Source: Blepharisma stoltei ATCC 30299
Taxonomy: Eukaryota > Protista > Ciliophora
DNA: 64,000 nucleotides
Assembly: GCA_965603825.1 (NCBI GenBank)
Contig: CBFDEM010000012.1
Location: forward strand, 558,001-622,000
Direction of reading: 5' to 3'
Position 1 is the first letter of the stretch. Every line of letters begins with the position of its first letter. The translations under genes were made by a program, and so were the position numbers. The notes under the pieces were generated by a model. The model saw only the letters and a list, made by a program, of their open reading frames with translations. It made no database searches and was not told the DNA's origin. This document shows positions 15,088-63,667 of this stretch, piece by piece.

Positions 15088-16727
15088 ATTAATTTCCAAT
15101 TTAAAGGGAGTCAGGCTCTGTTTATATCGTCTTGAAGAAAATTAATATAAAACTTTATTTCAAAATATTAGCATTTAAAAGAAAAAAATTATATGATAGT
15201 GCACATTACGGTCGTAGAGAATTGAATTTTATTTTTTAAAAAATCATCAAAAAGGAGAAATCAATATTATGAGATAAAACTTGAAAAAAATTCAGCTAAA
15301 TCATGCATAGCCCATAGTTTTAATTATTATCCAAACCAAATTTATTATTAAAATTATGGACATTTATCTGAAATACCGTGAAGATGAAAAAACTATTTAT
15401 AAGTAGTTTAGAGAGCTTATTTTGTTAATATTGAATGATTAAACATTAAAACAAAATCTATAAAATTTTTTAAAGCTTTTCGTGCAAGTGAGTATATTGC
15501 TTATAATAAAAAATTGTTTGTATGAGAAGATAACTAGCTCTGCAGAGTTTTTCTTTTAAGCTCTACTAATCTTTCGGTCGACAGCAAATACATTCCATTC
15601 TATGATTTGAGGTTTATTTTGCATGAGAGTTCAATCCCGGATTAGACTCGTAAGAAATATAGAGAGAGATATCCTATTTGTGGTCAGACCTTAAGAACTT
15701 TGAATTGCCTATGGTTTCACACTTAAATCCGGCAGCAGTGAGAAAGCTTTGCCAAATCTTGAATCATTGAAATCGGTAATATCATTTCCATGCATGCCCT
15801 GGAAGTCGCAAGTCCAACCCAGCGGGTCTGTGAGTCCAGCATGGCTGGGGCTTAAAATATGTTAAAAATTGTGGAAGTACTCTGGGATCTGGTAGTTCCT
15901 AAGAAAATAAAAAGCTATAAATCTTAAAATTAACTATAAACACTAAATCTATAAGCAGAAGCTCAACACAATTTGGACTGCAATAAAACTTAACGCATAA
16001 TGTTAATTAGTGGTATAAACTGAGTCATTTTTCATGTGGAATGATAGGCGAAGATTTACTAGAGATAGGTTAGTTAATAGCTAAATAAAGATATTTGCCT
16101 TATATCCTTTATTGCATTAGCGCTTTAGTTAAGGACAATACATATGAGAGTTATTTATGTAATGCTAATTATTTCTTCTAGTTCAAACAGGAATATATTT
16201 ATTTAAATATCTTTCTTTATAAGCATCTGAATGTCTATTTAAATTTATCACAAGGAAGAAAAATTGATTAATTTATTTATATTTCTTTTTCAATCAAGAA
16301 ATAAGCTAAAGACCTGGCCGCTTATTTAGCAAAGAAACTATGAATAATGAATCATAAATGGTTTAAATTTTATTATTTAAAAACTTTTTTTTGGAATCAA
16401 TGCTCCTCAACGCAGACAAATCTGATCAGCACTTTTGTCTCAATATTCATCGAAACGAATTCTAATAGCATGGAATCTAATTAAAGTCCATTAATGTTAG
16501 CATGAGTTGAGTTGATTTGTTTTATTCTGTTTTTGAATTTTGAAAAACCATCAGAATATTGCAAATTGCTATCAATCTTAAACAGCATCGCTTTAAAAAT
16601 ATTTAGTTGTATAAAATTGCTGTCTCTAGATTTGAACGGTCTGAATTAAATTCTGGCTTCTGAGTTCTTCAAATAGTCTAATATCCAAAAATCTCGATAA
16701 ACTTTCCATATATTGTAAAATAATTCA

Positions 16728-30939: not shown

Positions 30940-33432
30940 TTATAATAACAACTGCCTCTTGCCTCTAGCAAAAAAGTTAGGAACTTGTCTACCAAAAATA
31001 GATGTTAATTGGTTCGGGTAGCGAGATTTAACAACTGATTGCCGCTCAATGTCACTTGAAGATGAGTTTGTAGGGGAGTCTTCTTGGGATTCAGATTGTT
31101 TCATTTCACCTCGTAAAATAAGTCTTTTTGACTTTTTCGATACGCTTACAATACACATAGATTTTTGTTCAAGTTTCTTAAAAAGCGATGAATTTTTAGA
31201 ATCTTCTCTTGACCGAAAAGCTTGGAGACCTCTTGAATATGAAAGTTTTGCGATGTCTCTAATTCGAGACTGGTGCTTTGCTTCTTTATTTATTCGGTGA
31301 ATGTCTTCTAAGCTGTCGTACTGAATAGCACTTTCATTTCTTATGACTGGGGACTGCCTATTTAGCTTTGAAGATGTTTTTGGCGGCCTTGAAAAATACT
31401 TGGAAAGTGCTGATAACGGAGGTTTTTGGGCTTCCTTTTTTCTTCCTCGAGAAGGAGAACCGGCCAATTTTTTGTTGATTAATGGAGACTCAAGTCAGCA
31501 CTCAAATTGTTTAAAAACGTATAAAATATTTTTATTCATTTTTTTTTCAGTTTTGTCTCTTTCAATTTCTGTTTGCTCATCATCACTACTATCAGACGAC
31601 GAAGAGCTATCTTCAACGTTTTCTGGCTCTTCTTTAATTCTGCTAATAAACTCTTTCATGCTTCTTGGCTTATTTTTTGTGACTGGAGAGCTCGCTGAAG
31701 ACTCTACTTCCACCTCCCCCACTTCTTTTCTTTTAAGTCTTTCTTGTTTTCTGACTTCTCTATCTTTAATTTCTTGATCTCTCATATCAATAAACTCAAT
31801 TATTCTTTTTCCTAACTTTTTCCCGACCTTTTGGACAATTTCTTCGTTAAATGTGATTGTTTTTCTTTCTTCATCTATATACCCAAATGCTGAAATTTCC
31901 ATTGTATATGTAAAGGGTAGCCGAAACTCTTTTCATATAACAAGCCTTGCGGCATTTCGCTTATTTCAGTCGTTTTTAAATTTGCAAGAGTAATACCTGA
32001 ATATTTCTGTGGATTCACTCATAAGCTTTGGCAGGACTTTGAGTTTGCAATATTTATCAGAGTGGAGAGGATAGTGAGGAGCATACATAAAAACACCTTT
32101 TTTCTTTGAGTGGGAATGAAAATCAAAATAAAAAATCATTTTTTTGTTTTTCGCTAAAGTCGATACTTGGGATTTTAGATGGAAAATAGTAGGGTGAAGC
32201 TTTTGGTTGGGATTGTTGAATACTCTGTTTAAGTCAGATCCTGCTAATGAGCATCGTGTATTGCCTAAGATTACACCATCTATATTTATCATTGGGAGGA
32301 TTTTAAAAGTAATTCTTTTTCTTAAATCGACAGCTTGCTTATTGTTGCTTGTAATGAATTTTAAAAATCCTTCCATCGCTCATGATCCATGAGTTTCCCC
32401 AGGATGAGCTCTAGCTGTAGCAAAAATAAATTCTTTTTTCTCATCAGACTCAAAATCTGTCACAGTCAAATAAGGCACTTCAACTCCTCCTAAGCTTTTA
32501 CATAAAATTTCTTTCCTAACACATCTAAGTTTTTCCAACTCAGACACAAAATGGCAAAGCCTTGAAAATGAGTATGGGATTGAGTAAGCAAAATACGTGG
32601 CCTCATTTTCTGAAAAATTGTACTCAAAAGATAAAGAATAATAGCATTTTCTTACAAAGAGCTTATTTAATTTGCTTTGTGTGTATTGGATGTTATAGCC
32701 ACCTCTGGTTCATTTTGTTGAATTATTTTTTAAAATGCATGGCTGCATCCCTTGTACATATAAACTGTCTCTTTTAGAAAAATTGACGATATTTAGCTTG
32801 ATCTCTCTTGAGTCAGATCTATTTTTGATTAAAAAATAATATCATTGGTTATGCCCGTACGTATTCGAGTCTGGTCTTATATACAAATCGTATTCATTTT
32901 CTTTGACTTTTATCACTTTATCAAGGTTTCCTCCTTCAAATTTTGAATGAAATTCAAGCTCATTTGGGTCAAGTTCGGATTTCATACCTTCAAATGGCCG
33001 TTTATTTTGTTTGGGTTTTCCTTTATTAATGGCTGCTCATGCTTGCCTAATTGTGGGCTTTATATGGAAATTATAAGAATTTGGGCCAGAGTAAGTATCG
33101 TTGAGCTCTAAGGAATCTTCAGGTCTGAATCCATAAAAAATTGCATCTTTAGTCGGGATTTTATCGAAATTAAAAGAAAGCGGGACTGGACTATTTTGTA
33201 AGAGAGAATTTGGTCGTCACCTGAATAAGATTTACCCAAAAATCATGTCTGGTTCGAGACTGTGGCCAGATTGAGCAAGTGGGAGACATGGGGTTATGCA
33301 TTCTAAAGAGTCGTGATGAGGATGTCTTAGAAATTCTTTGTTTGTGGGTGTTGAATTTGGAATTTCCGATTCAACAATTATGTCATTTTCTGAATCTTGT
33401 TCAAATCCTGAATCTTCGCTTGTTTCATTCAT
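30940..33432 (-). CDS. Cytosolic carboxypeptidase (CCP/AGBL, M14 tubulin deglutamylase family); intron 33221-33235
   Basis: FHSKFEGGNL, ARAHPGETHGSW, PMINIDGVILGNTRCSLAGSDLNR, DFHSHSKK, YTMEISAFGY; fragments joined by TGA. Confidence 0.9.
33221..33235 (-). other. 15-nt intron GTAAATCTTATTCAG
   Basis: Joins the CCP N-terminal exon. Confidence 0.8.
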
Positions 33433-33891
33433 AATTATTATCCGAAACAGCTGTAAAAATTATTTAATCATTTTATTAGAGAAAAGTTGATTAGTTTAAC
33501 TACTATTAAAGAATCGTGAGTATTTTTATATATTTAATTAATTATTTTAAGTGCTATCATTCTTTGACTGAAAATTTAGCGAAATCAAATTATCAGTATT
33601 TTGCGGCCATAATTATGTATAAATAATTCAATATAATTATAGAATTAAATAAATTATGAAAAGCAAAATGACAAAGAACAAAATCCGATTCAATATTTTT
33701 TAAGTAGAGCTGATTAAAATAGTAAAATTTAATTTTGAGCCAGATAGCAGTAAGTCTCTTTTATTATAGATTTTTTAGCTATAAGCAAATAAAAGCCAAT
33801 AATCTTAAAGATATTAATTAAGATTCATTTTAGGTATCTTTAGATTTATAAAGCAAAATATGAATAAATATATATTAATAAATATTCCAAA

Positions 33892-34548
33892 TTAGCTTGC
33901 TCTTACAAAAGCTTGAACTACCATCTCATTTCTGACATAATAACTTGATAACGCTTGATCATCCTTCAGTTCTTTTCCACTAAAAAATAATCTTAGAGTT
34001 TCTGGATCAAGCCCATCTTTTTCTGCATATATTTCTTTAAGGACTCGGGAAAGGTTTTTTGTCTCAATCTGAATTTCTGTGTCATGCTCTTTTCCAGTTC
34101 TTCTAATTTTTAGCGTAATGAGCTCATTTTCTATCAAAGAAGGCTTAGGGACCATCACTTTTTTTTCGTTGGGAAAATAGATGGGATCATTTACAATATA
34201 AGGAGGAATGTCATAGATTGTCCCGTGAGCATCTTCACAATGAGTTATGCTGTCGTTTTTTAGCTTGATCTCATTCATTTCCAATAATAATTTTGCTGTT
34301 GCCGGATCAGATTCGATAGCACTTTTTATTGCAAGTCAGATATGTCTTCGGCCGGTTGATCTGGTTCTCCAAAATTCTATTCTTTTTGCTTCTAGTTGTT
34401 GCCTTGTGATTGTGGCTTTTCATGAAATGGTCTTCAAAACTCCTTCTCCTGTGAATTGATTTGGCAGTTCTTGATATTCTTTTCCTATAGTAAATCTTGG
34501 TCTAATAATATTCTCATCAGAATCACCTTTTGTGCAATTACTTCCCAT
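33892..34548 (-). CDS. Ubiquitin domain-containing protein (UBTD/DC-UbP family)
   Basis: MGSNC start, QLEAKRIEFWRTR...GRRHIWLAIK (TGA=W), YDIPPYIVNDP, C-terminal Ubl LRLFFSGKELKD. Confidence 0.85.
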
Positions 34549-34766
34549 AGAGTATTTTAAGAGCTTATAAAATATGTATAAAGCTGGCGACAAGGCAAAA
34601 GTCTATATATGTTAAGCGTTCTTATATTTTTTGAGCTGTAATTATGACCCTGCAATAGTTTGTAGACTTTAAGCGAGAGACTATTTTAGTCCTGATCCTT
34701 AGACAGCTAATTGCATCTCTTTTTTCCAGATGCGTTCAACCTAGTGGGTAACCATGTGAGGAAGGG

Positions 34767-34931
34767 AATCATACTAATAGCCCAGGAGCAATTATTAATC
34801 GTATTGGGCTGAGTTTTGCCTCGTAACTCCCGAGCTAGTTCGGCAATTTGAGTCGAAGAGCTAATCCAGGGAGATGCCCGGAAAAATCAGCCTAAGACGA
34901 TTAACAATCGCTCCTGGGCTATTCTGTGATT
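34767..34931. ncRNA. Long imperfect inverted repeat / fold-back, candidate structured or small-RNA precursor
   Basis: AATAGCCCAGGAGC (34776-34789) is the exact reverse complement of GCTCCTGGGCTATT (34910-34923); pairing extends inward and outward. Confidence 0.55.
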
Positions 34932-35443
34932 AATTCTGATAGTGAAAGCTGCTGGATTCTTTCTAAAGATCAAGGAAAGATGAGACAATTTCGACCTGTT
35001 CGAGCATGATAGGAGACGTCTTGTTTGGAAATTGAGCCAGTTAACAAAGCCAGTATTTGACTATTGACGTTCGCCGCTTTGACCTAGACTAAGGTGAGTA
35101 TGTCCTACCACCCTACAGAGCATGGAGTCAGTCAGGTTAGGGCTTTAAAGTTGCTATAATTTGAGTCTAATTTAATCTAAAAGATTATAAACAGATATTA
35201 CAATAACTCATATGATGGCAATTATATTTTTAAGCAATTAAGTAATTTTGTAATTTCCAAGCAACCATAGCAGGTCTTTAAGAAAATCCATCTATAAATT
35301 TATTTATAATAAACATTTTCCTAAATCAATACACATTTTCTAATTTTTTGAGAATTTAATTTCATTATTTAAAATATTTAAAGGAACCTGTTGCTAAATA
35401 TTTAAACTGTGGGATTTATAACTTTAAATAAAGCGGCATATAA

Positions 35444-36973
35444 ATGGATGATGATATTTTAAAAGCTTGTGTATATGTTGATGGAAGATATCATATTGCA
35501 TTTCATGATGGCTCAGGGCTTATTCTTCATCAAGGAGGTCAATATTCTACATATTTCTCATCTGAAGGTGAAGTTACTAGACAAATTACCTGATGCGTTC
35601 CTGGAATTTTAAAGCCAAAATTCCTTAAAGCCATTAAACTTTGCAACTCATTTGCATTTAGCCCAACTGCAATACTAAGTGATGATATTTATAAAACAAT
35701 TAAAAAAGACAGCAAAATAAGCATAATCCATTGACTTAATCCAGGATGGATTTCTGTAGTCGCAAAAGGAACTGAGACTGAGTTATTTCATTTTCAAATC
35801 GATCCAGATAGAGAAGATGTATTAATTATTGAAAAAGCTGAGGATGGAAGCTATTTCATGAAAAGTAGTGACAACGAGGCAGAAATGAGTATAAATCCTA
35901 ATGGTTTATTACTTAGATTTACATTTCCTTTATTGCTGCAAAATAAAAAGCCAGAATGGTCTCAAAATAAAAACCAAAGGTTTAAATTGTCCTACGAATA
36001 TGCTATTATCCAACAAATTTTTAGCACAAAAAATTATCCACCTTATCTAAGCGGTCCATTATCAATATTATGAGCAGCTTTTAAATGTGGCGACCAAGAA
36101 GTTATAAGAGAGCCTTCATGGTATCAAACTACAGAACTTTCATGGGATCGCCGAGAATTAGCTACTGCTTTGCCTACTCCTATCCAAGGGGAAATATGGA
36201 ATAATGATACAATTTCTCCTTCAGTGCAATTATTTACATATTATGCAAGCAAAGTTATGACTGTTTGGGAGCCAAAAGCGACTTATTATACAATATCAAA
36301 CAACTCAACAGAAACTTTAATACATGAAGACCAATCCTTTTTAATTTCCAATGGGGAATTTTTCACTTATTTTGCTGACTCAATTAAAAAATTCACCTCA
36401 GAGACTGTGCCTCCTTTAATCCGTAACCGATTTTCTTCATATTCCCCAAATGAAATCGTAAAAATGTGCATGGAAATTCAAAACCTCCCTGTCTATCAAA
36501 AACCTCAAGCTGAAGCTGATAACGGAATTTTTCTTGATGGGATAAAAGTAGAAAATCATATAGAAGGATTAGCTACATTTACAGCCTATAATGATAGGAG
36601 TATTAGGGTTTTGTTTGAAGATAGAACAGTGATTAGAATTCATCCTGATATGAGGGTTACAGCAGTCAACAAGCTAGGAGAAGTATCAAAAATTAGCTTG
36701 GACTCTCCATTTGGATTTGAAGAATACATTCCTGTATGTGTGGAATTTTATACCTGAGCCTTTACAAGCCAAGTAGAAAAATTAAGGATGGAAGAAGAAA
36801 GAGCAGAAAGGGAAGCAATCGTCAATGCAGAACTGCTGAGGACACAAAGGTTTTTGCAGCCAGTCCCAAAAATGTATGAATCCATGAATGAGATTCCTGA
36901 TGATAAAATAAAAGAAGCACTAGAAGCAACTCAGAGACAAATAGCAGAAATCCATGCGCTTTTACATAAATAA
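35444..36973 (+). CDS. C5orf34-like protein (DUF4524/DUF4520-like)
   Basis: One frame from ATG 35444 through several TGA. CVYVDGRYHIAFHDGSGLIL and GLATFTAYNDRSIRVLFEDRT resemble the N- and C-terminal C5orf34 domains (from memory). Confidence 0.65.
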
Positions 36974-37016
36974 TTGAATAAAGTGTATTTAAATATTTGA
37001 AATTAATTTAATTGAA

Positions 37017-38420
37017 TTACGCAAAGGTATGTATGAACTCTGCATAAGTTATTGTGTCTTCTTCTGTTTTCCTAATTTCGCTCATTATAGATTTTGTGTT
37101 AATTTTGATTCCGTATCTATTAAATGTGAGCTCTATATCTTTGGATGATATAAAGCCTTTTTTATTGAAATCAAGTAGATTATAAATAGTCCTTATTTCA
37201 TCTGATTCTAAATGATGTCTAGAATAGAGCGCTGCAGCTAAAAATTCTGAATAGCTTATGGCTCCATTCTGATCAATATCAATAGCTTTGATAAGATCTT
37301 TTATTTCATCTTGATCTAGTTTATGATCGCTTTTCTTCAAAATTTTTGCAAAATATTTCATAGTGATTTTTCCATTCAAATTTTTGTCTAGGCCTAAAAA
37401 TTTCTGCTTAAGCTCTTTCAAATCAGAAAAGCTTAAAATTTTTGCTACGATTTTCCATATTTGTTTTTGGAAAAGAGATGCTTTAGAATAATCCTGAAAA
37501 GATGAAAGGAGGGGCTTATCAATCGAAATTTTGGCTTTTGGGATTGATTTAAACCATGGGTGATTTAATGCCTGAGCGGCTGACAATCTTTTTGAAGGAT
37601 TTATTTCTAAAAGTTTTTGAATTAAATCTTTAGCATCACTTGACGCTTGCTTCCACAACTCATTATCGGTATCAAAGTTTCCAGATTTAATCTTTTTAAA
37701 AGTGTCACAGTCAAATTGCTCGCAAAAGGGTAATCTACGACAAATCATAATGTACATAATAATCCCGACACTCCATAAATCGCATTTATAATTATAAGAA
37801 CCTTTAAGAATTTCAGGAGCCATATAAAATGGAGTGCCCACTACTGTGTGAAAATGCTTGGACTTGCTTTTAAAGACGCGGGAAAGCCCAAAGTCTACGA
37901 GTTTTATGTCCGCGCCTTCTTCAGCTGATTCAAATAAAATATTATCTGGCTTTAAATCCCTGTGTACTATGCCATTTGCATGTAGATGGTTCACAGCCAT
38001 AAGGATTTTTCTCATAATTACTTGAGCCTTGTATTCTTCTATGTGATCAGTATTGATTATTTTGTAAAACAGTTCTCTGCCAGAGCAAAGTTCCATTGCT
38101 ATATACAAGTTCACGTCATCTTCATATGCTCCATAAAATTTAACAATATTTGGATGATCAAGCTTTCTAAGAATCTCAATTTCTCTTAGAAGCGTTTCAA
38201 TTTTGTCTTTAATTATTGATTTCTGAATTATTTTTATTGCGACCTTTTTATTTTCCCTGATATGTACAGCTTCCCTAACCACGCCAAAATTTCCGTGTCC
38301 TAATATTTTGCCAATGTTATATACAGATCTTATAGAAGGAACCCTGAAGGTAAATGGATTCTCTTTGTTAGGCTCGAATTTGGCATACTTAATACTTCTT
38401 TTGCTAACGTTTATTCCCAT
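37017..38420 (-). CDS. Calcium-dependent protein kinase, catalytically intact
   Basis: GHGNFG, VAIK, HRDLKPDN, DFG, APE; C-terminal EF-hands. Confidence 0.93.
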   Translation of the reverse strand: MGINVSKRSIKYAKFEPNKENPFTFRVPSIRSVYNIGKILGHGNFGVVREAVHIRENKKVAIKIIQKSIIKDKIETLLREIEILRKLDHPNIVKFYGAYEDDVNLYIAMELCSGRELFYKIINTDHIEEYKAQVIMRKILMAVNHLHANGIVHRDLKPDNILFESAEEGADIKLVDFGLSRVFKSKSKHFHTVVGTPFYMAPEILKGSYNYKCDLWSVGIIMYIMICRRLPFCEQFDCDTFKKIKSGNFDTDNELWKQASSDAKDLIQKLLEINPSKRLSAAQALNHPWFKSIPKAKISIDKPLLSSFQDYSKASLFQKQIWKIVAKILSFSDLKELKQKFLGLDKNLNGKITMKYFAKILKKSDHKLDQDEIKDLIKAIDIDQNGAISYSEFLAAALYSRHHLESDEIRTIYNLLDFNKKGFISSKDIELTFNRYGIKINTKSIMSEIRKTEEDTITYAEFIHTFA

Positions 38421-39182
38421 TTTGAATTTATATTAAAGATGGAAATCTTTTAAAATTCTCTTTACTCAGAAATCATTTTCAAAAATGGAACAGAAATTTC
38501 TGGAAATAGGCTAAATTATGAAGAGAGATTTGATATAATTAATTATTTATTATAAAAAATCATAACATTTACAGTTTATTTTAAATTTTTTTAAAAATTT
38601 TAAATTCTGATCAGGGTAATTTTCATTTATATACTAGGCCAATTAACTATACATGGAATATTCTTTGCCTTTAAATATTTAGGTGGCTATCCTAAATTTA
38701 GATTTAATTTGCATAACGCAATCTAAATTCTAAATAAAAACGATTAAATCAAGATAGATATATTTTATTTAATGCAATTTATTTATTTATTTTATTATGA
38801 TAACTGATGGAGCAATATTTATTAACTAATTAAATTATCGACTACTCAATTTCCTGTCTCAATGAAATGTTTTCGATAATTGATGTTTATATATTAAAAG
38901 AAAAGATCATCATAAATAATTGACACAATTTTTCTATACTCTGTTGGCAAATAGTTTAAATGCTCACAATTCCACTGTTGATTTTTGGTATTAAAAAATT
39001 AATTAAAAATACGAAAATTGTTTATTGATTTATACCACAAAGATTTAAGACAAATAAAGAAAACTATTAAAAATGACACCTTTCTTTATCACATAGACTA
39101 ATTTTCTGCCTTTATCCTGAGTATATGATTATTGATCTGGTCAGCCATAAATACTTAAAGTATACACAAAATTTTTCATTTA

Positions 39183-40088: not shown

Positions 40089-42056
40089 ATGCTATCCATT
40101 TTCAGAAGAAGATTCAGTCTGTATGCAAATACCTTCGCTAAGTCCATAGAAGAGCCAGAAGAGTTCTGGAAAGAGGCCGCACAAGGTATAGCGTGGGACA
40201 AGCCTTTCAGCAAGGTCTTGTGCTCCTCTCGCGCTCCAATTTATAAATGATTCCCAGATGGGAAGCTTAATATGTGCTATAACTGTCTCGATAGGCACGT
40301 GTTGGCAGGGGATGGGAAGAACTGGGGAATCATTTATGATAGTCCTATGACAAACCGTGTCATGCACTATACCTATGAGGAACTGCTTGAAGAAGTCCAA
40401 AAGTTGGCAGGCGCCATGGCATTCAAGCATAATGTCAAAGTAGGTGACCGAGTTGTTATATATATGCCACTTGTACCTGAAGCTATTATCGCAATGCTTG
40501 CATGTGCAAGAATAGGCGCAATCCATTCTGTTGTTTTTGGAGGATTTTCGGCAAAAGAATTAGCAAACAGAATTGTTGACAGTAAAGCGAAATTAATTAT
40601 TACAGCAAATGCAGGATTAGAGCCTAATAAGATTATTCCGTTCGAGCCGATTGTAAATGAAGCCACTGCTTTAGCAGAAGCCAGGCTTCCAGGTGCTGAA
40701 CATATCCAGAGAATTGTATTAAATCGACATTTAAATGTAAAATTCAAACTTCAGCCAAATAGAGATCATGATTTCTATGAAGAATTGATGAACTCAAGAC
40801 CTTTCACTTCTGTAATTAGCGTTTCTTCGAGCCATCCTTTGTATATTTTATATACATCAGGAACAACTGGAGCTCCAAAAGGTGTTGTAAGGGACACCGG
40901 CGGATATGCTGTAGCGTTAGATAATGCTATGAAATGGGTTTATGGAATTGATAAAGGTGATGTATTTTGGGCAGCGAGCGATATTGGATGGGTTGTTGGC
41001 CATACTTGTATTGTATATGGACCTTTGCTAAAAGGTGCTACTTCAGTATTGTACGAAGGGAAGCCAGTTGGAACTCCAGACGCTGGAGCTTGGTGGAGAG
41101 TTATTCAACAGCATGAGGTTAAAAGCTTGTTTGTAGCTCCAACAGGAGTGAGAGCTATCAAAAAAGAAGATCCATTAGGAAAATTGATGAGGAGATATAA
41201 TTTAGACACGCTCAAACACTTTGGAGTAGCTGGTGAAAGATGTGATCCTGATACTGTCAATTGGTTGCAGGAGCATCTACCCAAAAATACATTAATAAAC
41301 GATCATTGGTGGCAAACAGAATCTGGATGGCCGATGATAGGAAATTTCATGGGTCTTGATAGATTCGATACAAAACCAGGAAGTGCTACCAAACCTGCCC
41401 CAGGATGGGACATGCATATAATAAAAGATGACTTAACCGAAGCCGCACCTGACGAGCATGGGAAAATATGTGCAAAATTGCCAACACCTCCAGGCTTTAT
41501 GCTTTCTTTATGGGAAAGCGATGAGGCTTTTGTTAAAAAGTACATGTCAGAAATCCCTGGATATTACTTATCAGGGGATGAAGGATATAAAGATCAAGAC
41601 GGTTATTTCAACATTATGGGAAGAATTGATGACGTTATTAATATTGCAGGGCATAGATTTAGCACTGGAGCCTATGAAGAATGTATTTGTTTCCATCCAA
41701 ATGTGGCAGAATGTGCTGTTATTGGAGTTTATGATGATATTAAAGGAGAAATCCCTGTTGCATTTGTTGTTCCTAAGACTGGGTCTGAGATATCAGAGGC
41801 TGACTTAACTCATCAAATTATAAAGAAAATAAGAGAAGATATCGGAGCTGTAGCAAGCTTGAAAACTTGCATAATAGTAAAAAGACTTCCGAAGACAAGA
41901 AGCGGGAAAATCCCGAGGGTTCTTTTGAGGAAGATAGCGAATGGAGAAACCTATGCAGCGCCAGCAACTCTTGAAAACTTGGATGTTTTGGATGAAATGA
42001 AGGTTGCTTTGGAAGAGCATGGTTATCCAAGAAAAGATTTAAAACCGAAAGTTTAA
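40089..42056 (+). CDS. Short-chain acyl-CoA synthetase (ACSS3/PrpE-like), copy 1
   Basis: MLSIFRRRFSLY presequence, TGA(W) 40248, YTSGTTGAPKG, DHWWQTE, LPKTRSGK. Confidence 0.93.
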
Positions 42057-42392
42057 TGCTAATTAATTAGCTATCCGAAAAAATCCTTTTTCCTTTAATT
42101 ATACTAAATTTTTTGATGCATATTAAAAGACCTTCCCTTGGCTATTTATTTATCGATCATAATTAATATTATATGCTTAATAGTAGCTGAGATAATAATC
42201 AGCGTTTAGCTTAAAATTTAAAGCAAGTTTAAGCACATGAGTAGGCTAAAACTAAATTTATAAATTTATCCAATATAACTAGAAAATGACTTGCTTATTT
42301 ATCTTTTCAACATTAGAATTTTTATTTGCTGAATTATAAAAATGAGCCTCTTCTTTTGCATAGAACTTCAATTTATGATAAATTTGAATGAT

Positions 42393-42420
42393 CCATGACA
42401 TCATCTTATAAATGGAAGGA
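42393..42420 (+). promoter_or_regulatory. Conserved upstream element CCATGACATCATCTTATAAATGGAAGGA (ACS copy 2)
   Basis: Matches 39963-39989. Confidence 0.55.
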
Positions 42421-42502
42421 TATCGAAGATTATTTCATAATAAATCTTTACCTTATTAAGAATCATATTTCTCTACATTTCATTTCAGCCACATAATTTA
42501 GA

Positions 42503-44470
42503 ATGATGTCAATTTTTAGAAGAAGATTTAGTCTGTATGCAAATACTTTTAAAAAATCAATCGAGGAGCCAGAAGAGTTCTGGAAAGAAGCTGCGAAAAG
42601 AGTAGCATGGGACAAGCCTTTCAATAAAGTCTTGGATTCCTCGAGAGCTCCACTTTATAGATGGTTCCCAGATGGGAAGCTTAATATGTGCTATAACTGT
42701 CTCGATAGGCACGTGTTAGCAGGGGATGGGAAGAACTGGGGAATCATTTATGATAGTCCTATGATGAATCGTGTCATGCACTATACCTATGAGGAACTGC
42801 TTGAAGAAGTCCAAAAGTTGGCAGGCGCCATGGCATTCAAGCATAATGTCAAAGTAGGTGACCGAGTTGTTATATATATGCCACTTGTACCTGAAGCTAT
42901 TATCGCTATGCTTGCATGTGCAAGAATAGGCGCAATCCATTCTGTTGTTTTTGGAGGATTTTCGGCAAAAGAATTAGCAAACAGAATTGTTGACAGCAAA
43001 GCGAAATTAATTATTACAGCAAATGCAGGATTAGAGCCTAATAAGATAATCCCGTATGAGCCGATTGTAAATGAAGCCACTACTTTAGCAGAAGCAAGGC
43101 TTCCGGGTGCTGAGCATATCCAGAGGATTGTATTAAATCGACATTTAAATGTAAAATTCAAGCTTCAACCTAATAGAGATCATGATTTCTATGAAGAATT
43201 GATGAATTCTAAGCCATTCACTTCTGTAATTAGTGTTTCTTCTACTCATCCATTGTATATTTTATATACATCAGGGACGACTGGAACTCCTAAAGGTGTA
43301 GTCAGAGATACAGGTGGTCATGCAGTTGCTTTAGACAATGCTATGAAATGGGTATATGGAATTGACAAAGGTGATGTGTTTTGGGGTGCTAGTGATATCG
43401 GTTGGGCTGCTGGCCACACTTGCATTGTTTATGGGCCTTTGATAAAAGGAGCTACATCAATCCTATATGAAGGAAAGCCAGTAGGTACTCCAGATGCTGG
43501 AGCTTGGTGGAGAGTTATTCAGCAGCATGAGGTTAAAAGCTTGTTTGTCGCTCCTACAGGAGTTAGATCTATTAAAAAAGAAGATCCATTAGGGAAGTTG
43601 ATGAGGAGATATAATTTAGACTCTCTTCAGCATTTCGGAGTCGCTGGAGAAAGATGTGATCCTGATACTGTGCATTGGCTTCGAGAGCATTTACCTAAAA
43701 ATGCGTTAATCAATGATCATTGGTGGCAGACTGAAGCAGGATGGCCGATGATTGGAAATTTCTCAGGTCTGGATCGATTTGAAACAAAGCCTGGGAGTGC
43801 GACAAAGCCTGTCCCAGGATGGGACATGCATATAATAAAAGATGACTTAACTGAAGCCGCACCTGATGAGCCTGGGAAAATATGTGCAAAATTGCCGACA
43901 CCTCCTGGTTTCGTTCTTTCATTATGGGAAAGTGATGAGGCTTTTATTAAAAAGTACATGTCTGAAATCCCTGGATATTACTTATCAGGGGATGAAGGCT
44001 ATAAAGATCAAGACGGTTATTTCAACATTATGGGAAGAATTGATGACGTTATTAATATTGCAGGACATAGATTCAGCACTGGAGCCTATGAAGAATGCAT
44101 TTGTTTCCATCCAAATGTGGCAGAATGCGCCGTTATTGGAGTTTATGATGATATTAAAGGAGAAATCCCTGTTGCATTTGTTATTCCAAAGACTGGATCA
44201 CAGCTCTCAGATGCCGATTTAACTCATGAAATTATAACGAAAATAAGGAAAGATATCGGAGCTGTAGCCAGCTTGAAAACTTGCATAATAGTAAAAAGAC
44301 TTCCTAAGACAAGAAGTGGGAAAATTCCAAGAGTCCTTTTAAGGAAAATAGCTAATGGAGAGTCTTATACACCTCCAGCAACTCTTGAAAGCCTAGATGT
44401 TTTAGATGAAATGAAAGTTGCATTAGAAGAGCACGGCTATCCAAGAAAAGATTTAAAATCGGCAGTATAG
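42503..44470 (+). CDS. Short-chain acyl-CoA synthetase (ACSS3/PrpE-like), copy 2
   Basis: Uninterrupted 655-aa ORF with the same motifs. Confidence 0.95.
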   Translation: MMSIFRRRFSLYANTFKKSIEEPEEFWKEAAKRVAWDKPFNKVLDSSRAPLYRWFPDGKLNMCYNCLDRHVLAGDGKNWGIIYDSPMMNRVMHYTYEELLEEVQKLAGAMAFKHNVKVGDRVVIYMPLVPEAIIAMLACARIGAIHSVVFGGFSAKELANRIVDSKAKLIITANAGLEPNKIIPYEPIVNEATTLAEARLPGAEHIQRIVLNRHLNVKFKLQPNRDHDFYEELMNSKPFTSVISVSSTHPLYILYTSGTTGTPKGVVRDTGGHAVALDNAMKWVYGIDKGDVFWGASDIGWAAGHTCIVYGPLIKGATSILYEGKPVGTPDAGAWWRVIQQHEVKSLFVAPTGVRSIKKEDPLGKLMRRYNLDSLQHFGVAGERCDPDTVHWLREHLPKNALINDHWWQTEAGWPMIGNFSGLDRFETKPGSATKPVPGWDMHIIKDDLTEAAPDEPGKICAKLPTPPGFVLSLWESDEAFIKKYMSEIPGYYLSGDEGYKDQDGYFNIMGRIDDVINIAGHRFSTGAYEECICFHPNVAECAVIGVYDDIKGEIPVAFVIPKTGSQLSDADLTHEIITKIRKDIGAVASLKTCIIVKRLPKTRSGKIPRVLLRKIANGESYTPPATLESLDVLDEMKVALEEHGYPRKDLKSAV

Positions 44471-44691
44471 TTAAATAAGTTAATTAGAAATCTTATAATA
44501 GTCATTATATTTGTATTTTAATCAAAAATTGTCATACATATCTAAATAAGTCTAAATAATAACGATTAATAAAATGGAAGATAGAAAAACGGCAAATACT
44601 CTATTTTATCTATTTTCTAATAATTTTTAACAAATCAATAGTCGTTTTAGATTTTTTTGAATATTCGCCAATATAAAGCCACAAATAAAAT

Positions 44692-46659
44692 ATGTTGTCT
44701 GTGCTCAAGCGAAGGTTTGCTCTCTACAACACGGTTTTCTCTAAATCAATCCAGGACCCAGAGGGTTTTTGGAAGGAAGCTTCTAAAGGAATTTCCTGGG
44801 ATAAGCCTTTTACCAAAGTTCTTGACTCCTCCCACTCTCCTTTATATCGGTGGTTTCCAGATGGGAAGCTTAATATGTGCTATAATTGCTTAGATCGCCA
44901 CGTGTTATCAGGTCAAGGCCACAACTGGGGAATAATTTATGACAGTCCATTGACAAATTGTATTGTCCACTATACATATGAAGAGCTACTAGAAGAAACC
45001 CAAAAACTAGCTGGTGCAATGATGTATAAGCATGGCATTAAAAAAGGGGACAGGGTCGTGATTTTCATGCCCATGATACCTGAAGCTGTTATCTCTATGC
45101 TGGCATGTGCAAGAATTGGCGCTATACACTCTGTGGTTTTTGCTGGATTTTCAGCTAAAGAGCTCGCAAATAGGATTAGTGAAAGCAAGGCAAAATTATT
45201 AATAACTGCTAATGCTGGAGTAGAGCCAGGAAAAGTGACACCATTTGAACCTATTGTGAATGAAGCTGTACTTATGGCTGAGTCAAACATGACATGTGCA
45301 GAAAATATACCCAGGATTGTAGTTAATAGACATTTAGGAGTGAAATTTAATTTGCGGCCTCATAGAGATCATGATTTTCATGAAGAACTGATGAATTCAA
45401 AGCCTTTTGAGTCTGTTGTCAGTGTAAACTCTTATGATCCACTATATATTTTACATACAACTGGGTCTACTGGGAAACCAAAAGGGATTATCAGAGATAC
45501 TGGAGGATATGCAGTAGCTTTAGATAATGCTATGAAATGGGTCTATGGGATCAATAGAGGAGATGTGTTTTGGTCAGCTGGAGATCTAGCTTGGGTTGCT
45601 GGGCATACTTGCTCTGTTTATGGACCGTTATTGAGAGGAGCAACATCTGTTTTATATGAAGGAAAACCTGTTAGAACTCCTGATGCAGGAGCATGGTGGA
45701 GAGTTATACAGCAGCATGAAGTAAAAAGTGTTCTTGTAGCTCCAACTGGAATTAGAGCTATTAAAAAAGAAGATCCATCAGGCAAACTTATGAAAAAATA
45801 CAATTTAGATAGCATTGAACACTTTGGGGTTGTTGGAGAAAGATGTGACTCAGACACATTAAGCTGACTTCAACATAGATTGCCTAAAAAAGCTTTAATA
45901 AACGATCAATGGTGGCAAACAGAATCAGGATGGCCTATGATAAGCAATCAAATCGGCCTTGAAAAATTCGCCACAATGCCTGGTAGTGCAACAAAGCCAG
46001 TGCCTGGTTGGAATATTCAAATAATCAAAGACAACTTGCAAGAAGCCGATTCCAATGTAACTGGAAAAATCTGTGTAAAACTTCCTACGCCTCCTGGCTT
46101 CATGCTTTCTCTATGGGAAAACGATGAAGAATTTAAAAAGAAATATATGACTGAAGTACCTGGATATTACTTGTCAGGTGACGAAGGTTTCAAAGATGAT
46201 AAAGGCTATTTCCATATAGTAGGCAGAACAAATGACGTTATAAATATTTCTGGGCATAGGTTTAGAGCTGCAGCTTATGAAGAGTCTATTAATTTCCACC
46301 CAAATGTAGCAGAGTGCGCTGTTATTGGAGTCATTGATGAAATTCGTGGAGAAATCCCAATCGCGCTTATTGTAATTAAAGAAGGGTCTGATAAGACAGA
46401 TGATGATATCACTCATGAATTGATTAGTAAAGTCAGGCAAGATATAGGAGCAGTTGCAAGCCTTAAAACTTGCATCATTGTCAACAAACTACCTAAGACG
46501 AAAGATGGCAAAGTCCCAAGACTTTTGCTGAAAAAGATGGCGAACGGAGATTATTACCCAGCAAACACTGTATTGGAAAATCCTGAAGCACTGGAAGAGA
46601 TTAAAGAAGCTTTTGAGAAGCATGGGTATCCAAAAGTTGACTATAATTTAAAGGAATAA
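44692..46659 (+). CDS. Short-chain acyl-CoA synthetase, divergent copy 3
   Basis: TGA 45865 aligns with TGG in the paralogs; same 1968-nt length. Confidence 0.92.
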
Positions 46660-48592: not shown

Positions 48593-48665
48593 TACAAGCG
48601 GCGGGGATTGAACCCACGACCTTCTGCGTGTAAAGCAGATGTGATAACCACTACACTACGCTTGC
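48593..48665 (-). tRNA. tRNA-Val (anticodon UAC)
   Basis: Acceptor GCAAGCG/CGCTTGT, anticodon arm TCTGC-TTTACAC-GCAGA, T arm GTGGG-TTCAATC-CCCGC, followed by an oligo-T run. Confidence 0.97.
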
Positions 48666-61297: not shown

Positions 61298-63667
61298 ATG
61301 AACCAAACCATATCACCTTTTGAGGTTTATATCAGAATTCGGCCACTTTCAGAAACAGAGCAGAGCTTCCCAAGGGTAAAATCATCAAAAATTGTGACAA
61401 CAAACCAAGGCAGTATATCAAATGATCTTTGGCTACAAGATCCAAGTTTTACAACTAAAAGGTATGCTTTTGATGGAGTTTTTAATGAAGATTGCAACAA
61501 TAAAGAAGTTTATGATTTCGCTATTGAAAAACTCATTGAAAGCTTGTCAAATGGCTATAATGCCACTTGCTTTGCATATGGAAACACAGGTGCTGGCAAA
61601 ACACATACAATGTTCGGCCATATCACATCTTTAAAAAACAATGAGCGCGGGATTGTTTTCCTTGCACTAGAAGGCTGCTTCAAAAGATTTTCAAGCATGT
61701 CAAAAGTTTGTCTCAAGGCTAGCTATTTAGAAATTTATAATGAAAATGTGAAAGACCTGCTCAACCCTCAAGATTCCAAAGGATTAATGATAATTGAAGA
61801 TCCCTCCAAAGGCATTTTAGTCCCTGAACTAAGAGAATTCGAGGTAGAAAACTTAGAGCAGCTTTATGATATTGTGCTAGAAGGAAATAAAAACCGAACT
61901 TTTGCCTCAACCAGCGCAAATGAGCTATCAACGAGATCTCATGCCATTTTACAGTTAAATATAGAACAGTCCCATAAAAATGAAATTATTTCTTCTAGAC
62001 TATGCATGATTGATTTAGCTGGAAGCGAAAGAGGAGCTTCAACTGATAACAAAGGACAAAGAATGGTAGAAGGCGCCATGATAAATAAGTCTTTATTAGC
62101 ACTCGGGAACTGTATTAATATTTTGAGCGACGATAAGAAAAAAGGAAGATATGTCCCTTATAGAGATTCTAAACTAACAAGGCTACTTAAAGACTCTTTA
62201 GGCGGAAATACCAGGACAACCATGATTGCTTGTATAATCCCTGCCGCATTTGCATATGAAGACACCTATCATACTTTGAAATACGCCCAAAGAGTCAAGC
62301 TTATAAGCACAAAGGTAAGTAAAACCATAAAAGAAGTTCAGTATGACTATAAAGATATTATTAATAGCTTAAGATCAGAAATAGAAACTTTGAAAATCCA
62401 GCTTAAAAGGCAAGAAGACCAAAACAGCTATCAAGATTTAAGTATTGAAGACGAAAAAGATGAAGAAAAATATAAAAATTTATCAAGATTACTGAGGACG
62501 AATTTTGAAGAGCATTGGGAGCTAAAACAAAGCATAAAAGAAATTGAAGCCCTTAATGAGCAGAATAGGACAAGGTTAAAGTATTTGGTAGAAAGAATTG
62601 AAGCAGAAAATAATGATAAAGAAATATGTATTTTTGAAGATTTAAAAAATGAGCTACAATTAGTACAAGAAAATATAAGAGAAAACGAGGAAAACAGAAA
62701 TGAGCTATTGCAGGCGATGTATGCAAATATGAAACAGAAACAGACGCTTCAAAAAGAAATGGGAAATGTTAAAGACAGCAAAAAACGAGATCTTTTAGAA
62801 TTACAAATTGCTGTTAGAACTTTAAAACTAGAAAAATTAGATTTACATATGCAGAATCTAGAGCTGCAAAAAAAAGCTGAAGAGTCTGAAAAAATCAGTG
62901 AAGAAAAAGACAAAATTATTCAAGAAATGAAAAAAGAAATAGATAATATGAAACGGCGAATAAAATCGCGACAAAATTCATTGCTACCTCTACAAGAACT
63001 AGAAATGAATGAAGAAAACTTAAAACCTGATAATCTTTATGACAGCTTAGGAGACACAATAAGAGTAATTCCTACAAAATTGTCAAATCCTTCACCTAAG
63101 GTTACAAAATGGAATGAAATCAAAATTTCCCATCTTTCTGAAGCAAGGAATTTAAGAAAATCAGGAAGCAAAAATTTAGAGACAACGTCAAAGGCCACTG
63201 CATTTTTAGAGGAATATAAAACAGTAAAAGATCATGAAGTATATGAAGAAATCAATGATTTGACTAAGGTAAGATCAAGCTCTGTGTTGCCGAAAAATAA
63301 AATTAATTATCAAAATAGTGAAGAGGAGAAAACACCGAGGTATAATGCATTTGGAAAAAATAAAATTTCTACTAAAAAAGGAGCTTTTAGCCTATTGTAT
63401 CCATCAATCCCTCGGTCTATATCTCTTGCAAGATCTAATAGCACAAAAACAAGGAAGCAGCCATATAGCTCACAAAGAGGATATAAGCCTTCTTTAGAAA
63501 GAGCAGTCAGCAGAGAATACTCACCATCACCAAATAAAAATGATGAAAATAATCCTGCAAAGCTGCAGCAAAATATAAGAGATGCGACAAGACAGCTGAT
63601 TCCAAACAAAACGACAAATTTAATCAGAAAACTGGTAAGCTCAAAATTGATCCCAAGAGCGAAATAA
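61298..63667 (+). CDS. Kinesin, probably kinesin-8 (KIF18/19-like)
   Basis: GNTGAGKT, RSHA, DLAGSER, INKSLLALGNCIN, VPYRDSKLTRLLKDSLGGN. Confidence 0.92.
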   Translation: MNQTISPFEVYIRIRPLSETEQSFPRVKSSKIVTTNQGSISNDLWLQDPSFTTKRYAFDGVFNEDCNNKEVYDFAIEKLIESLSNGYNATCFAYGNTGAGKTHTMFGHITSLKNNERGIVFLALEGCFKRFSSMSKVCLKASYLEIYNENVKDLLNPQDSKGLMIIEDPSKGILVPELREFEVENLEQLYDIVLEGNKNRTFASTSANELSTRSHAILQLNIEQSHKNEIISSRLCMIDLAGSERGASTDNKGQRMVEGAMINKSLLALGNCINILSDDKKKGRYVPYRDSKLTRLLKDSLGGNTRTTMIACIIPAAFAYEDTYHTLKYAQRVKLISTKVSKTIKEVQYDYKDIINSLRSEIETLKIQLKRQEDQNSYQDLSIEDEKDEEKYKNLSRLLRTNFEEHWELKQSIKEIEALNEQNRTRLKYLVERIEAENNDKEICIFEDLKNELQLVQENIRENEENRNELLQAMYANMKQKQTLQKEMGNVKDSKKRDLLELQIAVRTLKLEKLDLHMQNLELQKKAEESEKISEEKDKIIQEMKKEIDNMKRRIKSRQNSLLPLQELEMNEENLKPDNLYDSLGDTIRVIPTKLSNPSPKVTKWNEIKISHLSEARNLRKSGSKNLETTSKATAFLEEYKTVKDHEVYEEINDLTKVRSSSVLPKNKINYQNSEEEKTPRYNAFGKNKISTKKGAFSLLYPSIPRSISLARSNSTKTRKQPYSSQRGYKPSLERAVSREYSPSPNKNDENNPAKLQQNIRDATRQLIPNKTTNLIRKLVSSKLIPRAK

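Follow-up and report, generated by a model that had tools for sequence, protein, structure and literature searches.

A 165-nt fold-back beside a UBTD-like gene of Blepharisma stoltei is probably a somatically retained copy of a palindromic mobile-element family

Is a long, nearly perfect hairpin in a non-coding stretch of a ciliate somatic genome a small-RNA gene, or is it what is left of a mobile element? The question is raised by a 165-nt fold-back between two genes of Blepharisma stoltei, which the initial annotation put forward as a candidate miRNA-like or hairpin-siRNA precursor, naming a MITE or a retained, IES-like sequence with terminal inverted repeats as the alternative. The evidence considered here favours that alternative: a retained mobile-element relic is a more likely identity for the fold-back than a dedicated microRNA-type gene, and we put at roughly 0.6 the probability that it is one copy of a low-copy, non-coding palindromic family of the MITE/fold-back type, retained in the soma. 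The window is the whole 64-kb stretch of DNA that was analyzed; the genome searched is the somatic assembly (41.46 Mb in 64 contigs), and the germline comparison uses the MAC+IES assembly (NCBI record GCA_914767885.1). Coordinates are collected in Table 1.

Table 1. The fold-back, its surroundings and related copies elsewhere in the somatic genome. Positions refer to the window unless a contig is named; C12 is the contig that holds the window, and R1, R2 and R3 are the covariance models described in the text.
Feature	Position	Strand	Basis
Whole fold-back copy, 165 nt	34767-34931 (C12:592767-592931)	.	Minimum free energy (MFE) on both strands; top R1 and R3 match, both strands
Left arm, holding palindromic unit copy 1	34776-34817	.	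Inverted repeat; unit-model R2 match 34774-34815 (+), 46.7 bits
Right arm, holding palindromic unit copy 2	34882-34923	.	Inverted repeat; R2 match 34884-34925 (-), 46.4 bits
Inner palindrome, more decayed, with apical helices and 7-nt loop (34845-34851)	34818-34881	.	Fold
GC-richer non-coding island, ~600 nt, with RNA-type contig coverage	34595-35193	.	GC profile; ORF, Pfam and Rfam searches; folds
UBTD-like gene, 218 aa, UBD and ubiquitin-like domain, N-terminus MGSNCTK	33892-34548	-	PF16455, PF00240
C5orf34_C-like gene, 509 aa, single copy in the genome	35444-36973	+	RNA-type contigs begin at 35422-35459
Insertion site of a TA-bounded germline IES of ~380 bp	35010-35011	.	MAC+IES loci L005 and L280 against the window
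Family copy, 56 nt, collapsed	C24:330841-330896		R1
Family copy, 215 nt, long	C43:548013-548229		R1, E 0.6
Family copy, 49 nt, collapsed	C2:173090-173138		R1, E 2.4
Family copy, collapsed	C54:592099-592140		R2, 43.9 bits; outside the training set
Family copy, 235 nt, long	C53:364223-364457		R3, 38.5 bits, E 1e-4
Family copy, long	C64:356170-356384		R3, E 0.03

The hairpin and the island around it

The 165-nt hairpin is confirmed. Its arms, 42 nt each, are 88% complementary without a gap, and within them the 37-nt cores match at 33 of 37 positions, as first described, the four differences being three A/G transitions and one A/C. The pairing that had been traced outward (AATCA/TGATT) and inward to the 7-nt loop is all present in the minimum-energy structure; when the two strands are aligned, symmetry is much lower in the inner palindrome than in the arms. 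The MFE is -80.3 kcal/mol on the + strand (z -10.8) and -76.8 kcal/mol on the - strand (z -9.2), and on neither strand is any of 200 dinucleotide shuffles as stable. Elsewhere in the window, the arms of inverted repeats do not exceed 27 nt, and among local inverted repeats in 292 kb of the genome the fold-back has 37 matched pairs, against 21 for the runner-up, which is AT-rich. It thus combines terminal inverted repeats with a lack of coding capacity, as a MITE or fold-back element does. Its G-U pairs favour neither strand, whether read from the folds or from the alignment of the arms.

The surroundings are also as first reported, a GC-richer island between divergent genes: GC content is 0.41-0.455 over 34700-35100 and 0.21-0.30 in the neighboring spacers, with the UBTD-like gene to the left and the C5orf34_C-like gene to the right. 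The UBTD-like gene is complete, with stop codons just upstream of its start. The 895 nt between the genes consist of ~70 nt of AT-rich sequence, the 600-nt island and 250 nt that are very AT-rich; ~430 nt of the island lie outside the fold-back element and are not accounted for by it.

Several identities for the island were considered and rejected. It is not a coding or pseudogene relic: with TGA read as Trp no reading frame in it is ATG-led, the single long frame that stays open is Trp-rich, and its stop-free pieces have no Pfam match. (The somatic genome of B. stoltei uses UGA for tryptophan and has tiny UTRs and tiny introns (bioRxiv 10.1101/2021.12.14.471607).) Nor is it a structured long RNA, because the parts flanking the hairpin fold no better than shuffles on both strands (z -0.1 to +0.9), or a larger inverted-repeat element spanning the whole island, inverted and direct repeats at its borders not being above shuffles. 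No known RNA family is indicated by the Rfam search that the initial annotation had proposed, which over 33500-36000 at E<=10 returns only a chance snoRNA match inside the UBTD coding sequence. Telomerase RNA, which published work did not find in heterotrichs (bioRxiv 10.1101/2021.12.14.471607), was rejected as well: the island matches the CCCTAACA repeat over no more than 7 nt (~35131-35137, - strand), as would be expected by chance. The sole Rfam match at gathering level in the window is a tRNA gene (48593-48665, - strand).

The island and the hairpin are very probably transcribed and contiguous with the UBTD-like gene. Each of three runs of one study gives one contig, starting at 33919 or 33980 and ending at 35165, 35171 or 35193, that takes in the UBTD coding sequence together with the hairpin and island; no RNA-type coverage follows until the next contig, which begins after 35421 at the start of the right-hand gene. 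A DNA run fills the gap before 35421, and a DNA contig also spans the fold-back. The three runs are labelled only as probable RNA, and their RNA nature is read from this coverage pattern, which is as expected of RNA; the contigs reveal neither strand, ends nor single-transcript status. On the same reading of the coverage, a stable stem-loop lies within a transcript, as a miRNA or hairpin-siRNA precursor requires, and with the hairpin very probably included in a long RNA, a substrate for Dicer could form.

A dispersed family of palindromic copies

BLASTN against the whole somatic genome, the kind of search that the initial annotation had suggested, returns only the C12 locus itself. The single locus stands for that method; structure-aware models reveal diverged relatives. 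The models are R1, a covariance model built from the two strands of the C12 hairpin; R2, a model of the repeated unit; and R3, built from the C12 and C43 copies. Together they find six further somatic loci, comprising three fold-backs of ~205-235 nt and three collapsed hairpins of 36-56 nt, so that the family has at least seven loci, on seven contigs. The C54 copy is identical to the C24 copy at 31 of the 34 nt of C54 that were compared. When R2 was calibrated on metagenome hairpins forced to share the 9+9-nt stem, the highest control score was 29.4 bits, so that the 39-50 bits of the family members point to genuine similarity in loop and mid-arm. A two-arm pattern of the full hairpin has no match in the metagenome and prokaryote collections. 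A pattern of the short unit has more than 120 matches per collection; the 79 metagenome loci among them that were re-scored do not rise above the baseline. Within the window, R2 also gives a weak, AT-rich match of 18.2 bits at 61958-62006 (- strand), which is probably due to chance.

The repeated unit is ~36 nt long and is itself an imperfect palindrome, of which the window has two in inverted orientation. Eight arms or units align over 42 columns without gaps; TAGCC, AG and GCT are invariant, TTAATCG is present in most, and three arms begin with TATAGCC. Conservation peaks at the terminus, which forms the base of the stem and contains TA. Every arm has TA at its two ends; as the repeat itself may include these dinucleotides, they do not demonstrate a target-site duplication, and no empty site was found. 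In the four copies that were read (C12, C24, C43 and C2), the flanks are mutually unrelated, AT-rich and intergenic-looking. Dispersal with unrelated flanks, a mark of MITEs, is thus seen in a family of seven loci, of low copy number, from the four flanks compared. The three collapsed copies have wholly lost the mid-stem and consist of termini only.

At C12 and at C43 the element is GC-richer than its surroundings. The C43 copy is the weaker fold-back, its two strands folding to -68 kcal/mol (z -4.4) and -46.8 kcal/mol (z -2.3). Between C12 and C43, 16 of 53 pairs are changed on both sides while 90% of cells are still paired (slid controls, 2-7), a comparison that is no more than indicative, being drawn from two loci in an alignment fitted to the model. 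Transitions between the C43 arms split 6:4, and the two strands score equally in every model search, leaving no mark of a sense strand.

The family is small. A two-arm search of the genome with the family termini and a 10-40-nt gap finds two short loci only. Solo sites of the terminal 10-mer are chance occurrences: Markov models of orders 1-3, trained on 292 kb, predict 18-23 per strand, and most solo sites diverge directly after the 10-mer. An apparent enrichment of the 10-mer (51 matches against 1 for the reversed control) was dropped as an artefact of the control; the reversed word, for which the Markov models predict ~5 matches per strand, contains CG and is a poor control here.

Germline context and the paralogous locus

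The fold-back is colinear between the somatic and MAC+IES assemblies and is therefore neither an annotated IES nor excised; an IES is present in the germline and removed from the soma, whereas the fold-back is present in the somatic assembly. It contains no IES, and the ~380-bp IES that is absent from the somatic sequence is inserted 79 nt to its right. Over window positions 23155-52714 (loci L280, L281 and L005 of the MAC+IES assembly) there are 25 germline-limited inserts of 58-4188 bp, 12.6 kb in total, in which neither the fold-back family nor the island has a match; the link to excised IESs is thus by analogy only.

That analogy is with the palindromic repeats already described in the same organism. 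In the B. stoltei germline, 376 IESs are reported to be palindromic throughout; they fall into several unrelated families, many measure ~228 bp, and IES ends begin with TATAG in the ~153- and ~174-bp classes (Seah et al. 2023, PMC9942856 supplement); the palindromic families may be MITEs, termed "MITIES" (PMC9942856). The fold-back family resembles them in its full-length palindromy, in a size of ~150-230 bp and in its TA-containing ends, three arms sharing the TATAG start. In contrast to the published elements, the fold-back copy is somatic and stays in place, and the likeness to the published families, rnd-1_family-87 and -160 among them, is drawn at the level of their description. As an addition to this known kind, the palindromic MITE/IES-like elements of Blepharisma, the fold-back family fits better than as a miRNA gene.

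A paralogous region on contig C35 retains a kinase gene (74% nucleotide identity) and a UBTD paralogue (81% nucleotide and 88% protein identity) with 397 AT-rich nt between them. Compared with window positions 33867-38491, it (C35:263500-270500, locus L010) lacks the island, the hairpin and the C5orf34 gene; as the entire island is missing, the locus provides no precise empty site. The difference suggests a segmental or whole-genome duplication followed by differential loss or by an insertion. There is likewise no comparable hairpin within 1.5 kb upstream of three more distant UBTD paralogues, or within 1.5 kb upstream of a 72%-identical gene of another species (Logan contig L004); since these loci have not kept synteny, the absence is weak evidence. 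In all, the genome contains at least eight paralogues of the UBTD-like gene (on C35, C37, C46, C28, C25 and C47 and at a second site on C12), with 28-100% identity to the C35 copy.

Mobile-element relic or RNA gene

Dispersed copies with unrelated flanks, conserved termini, collapsed forms, equal strand scores and absence from the paralogous locus all fit a mobile or formerly mobile element, as does the lack of structure outside the element. Each arm is a copy of the 36-nt imperfectly palindromic unit, with a conserved TA-containing terminus as expected of mobile-element ends. If the fold-back is such an element, the collapsed copies would be internally deleted elements, and the potential to form a hairpin would be a by-product of palindromy at the DNA level and not of selection on RNA. 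The UBTD-like gene probably has its promoter in the AT-rich spacer on the far side of the island, and since the element copy sits between gene and spacer, it would be transcribed passively, in a long 5' leader or in an overlapping upstream transcript. Mobility, passive transcription and the lack of a dedicated RNA function are the parts of this reading that we infer. Against it stand a low copy number (seven loci), E values that are in part marginal (C43, C2 and C64), the lack of a known autonomous partner element, and the symmetry of the arm changes, which is equally expected of a selected hairpin RNA family.

Selection on RNA structure, which the nested pairing had been taken to suggest, is not favoured by a family of at least seven dispersed loci, three of them without the mid-stem, in which G-U pairs are strand-neutral and the paralogue lacks the hairpin. 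A miRNA-type gene should conserve its mid-stem, and the family pattern does not fit: the mid-stem is not conserved above the stem base or the loop, and the invariant positions are those of the terminal TAGCC, the AG and the GCT of the unit. Of the precursor first proposed, the part that holds is the long RNA that very probably covers the hairpin; dispersal, the conserved stem base and the lost mid-stem speak against the rest. A transcribed stem of more than 40 bp is nevertheless a plausible Dicer substrate, which leaves readings built on small RNAs some probability. One is that the transcribed fold-back, possibly exapted, is diced to 22-24-nt RNAs, or that its hairpin of more than 30 bp recruits an RdRP complex, as at TASL loci, to make small RNAs from the island. 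We regard this as unlikely. RNA-type contigs do span the hairpin and island, the stem is long and nearly perfect, and a non-coding island is unusual in a genome with tiny UTRs (bioRxiv 10.1101/2021.12.14.471607); B. stoltei has abundant 22-nt and 24-nt small RNAs, some from outside coding sequences and IESs (PMC9942856), and hairpins have been turned to such ends in other organisms. The family evidence weighs the other way, as do the 6:4 split of the C43 arm transitions, the lack of the hairpin in the paralogue and in one other species, and a search at E<=10 in which no somatic sequence beyond the family copies is a complementary target.

Two known systems offer parallels. Human mir-548 derives from Made1 (PMC1784062) and plant miRNA genes have likewise derived from MITEs (PMC3086885), in each case from a short, near-perfect palindrome that gives a pre-miRNA-like hairpin on read-through; unlike these, the fold-back is a candidate only, with no target found. 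In Tetrahymena, TASL loci are lncRNAs in which a terminal hairpin of more than 30 bp drives, and is needed for, the production of 23-24-nt small RNAs (PMC5340916). The likeness is that of a ciliate macronuclear non-coding transcript with a long hairpin, the transcript here being deduced from contigs; the difference is that the C12 hairpin, a candidate source of small RNAs, belongs to a repeat family. That a palindromic mobile-element copy has been co-opted as the hairpin of a small-RNA-generating locus (hairpin-siRNA or TASL-like) beside the UBTD-like gene is a distinctly improbable outcome, and, if true, would be the first description of a locus of this kind from a heterotrich. Processing of the hairpin to small RNAs would give access for the first time to endogenous small RNAs made from hairpins in an early-branching ciliate.

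Two further readings give the hairpin a role as RNA. In the very doubtful case that the UBTD-like mRNA has a long 5' leader in which the hairpin acts in cis to lower or tune translation, the leader on the - strand would be ~645 nt long, with five upstream ATGs and a -77 kcal/mol hairpin, and the RNA-type contigs do extend continuously from ~35193 across the hairpin and into the coding sequence of the UBTD-like gene. They show, however, neither a single transcript nor a strand; a second start site, closer to the gene, could lie in the AT-rich sequence at 34549-34620; the paralogue has an ordinary upstream spacer; and the hairpin occurs in other contexts as a member of its repeat family. It is highly improbable that the family consists of dispersed structured ncRNA genes and not of mobile DNA, each hairpin RNA having its own function. 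Such genes would be dispersed, would keep pairing despite two-sided changes and could be GC-richer than their surroundings, as the element is at C12 and C43; yet there is no Rfam match, the unrelated flanks leave no room for a conserved promoter or a conserved terminator, the copies measure between 36 and 235 nt, the middle having been lost, and the equal scores of the strands leave the sense strand unmarked.

If the fold-back is a mobile-element relic, it is a small addition to the Blepharisma catalogue, in which long and collapsed copies alike escape genome editing into the soma. A palindromic family retained in the soma bears on what the excision machinery recognizes. In practice, a strong hairpin in B. 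stoltei should first be tested for membership of a repeat family with structure-aware models, since BLASTN called this one single-copy.

Other germline-limited inserts of the interval 23155-52714 have features of their own. At least eight of the 25 (254-544 bp) end in inverted repeats of the CTCCCC...GGGGAG type. Two inserts of 562 and 461 bp at ~32340-32360 and 33519-33533 (L280:13930-14491 and 15687-16147), in or beside a peptidase M14 gene, are GC-rich (0.47-0.48, against 0.10-0.40 in the others), have junction overlaps of 14-21 nt and match nothing else in the window. Three tandem genes at 40272-45867 (L281:7364-15083), each annotated as a 655-aa acetyl-CoA-synthetase-like protein (ACAS_N, AMP-binding), are each interrupted by IESs in the germline.
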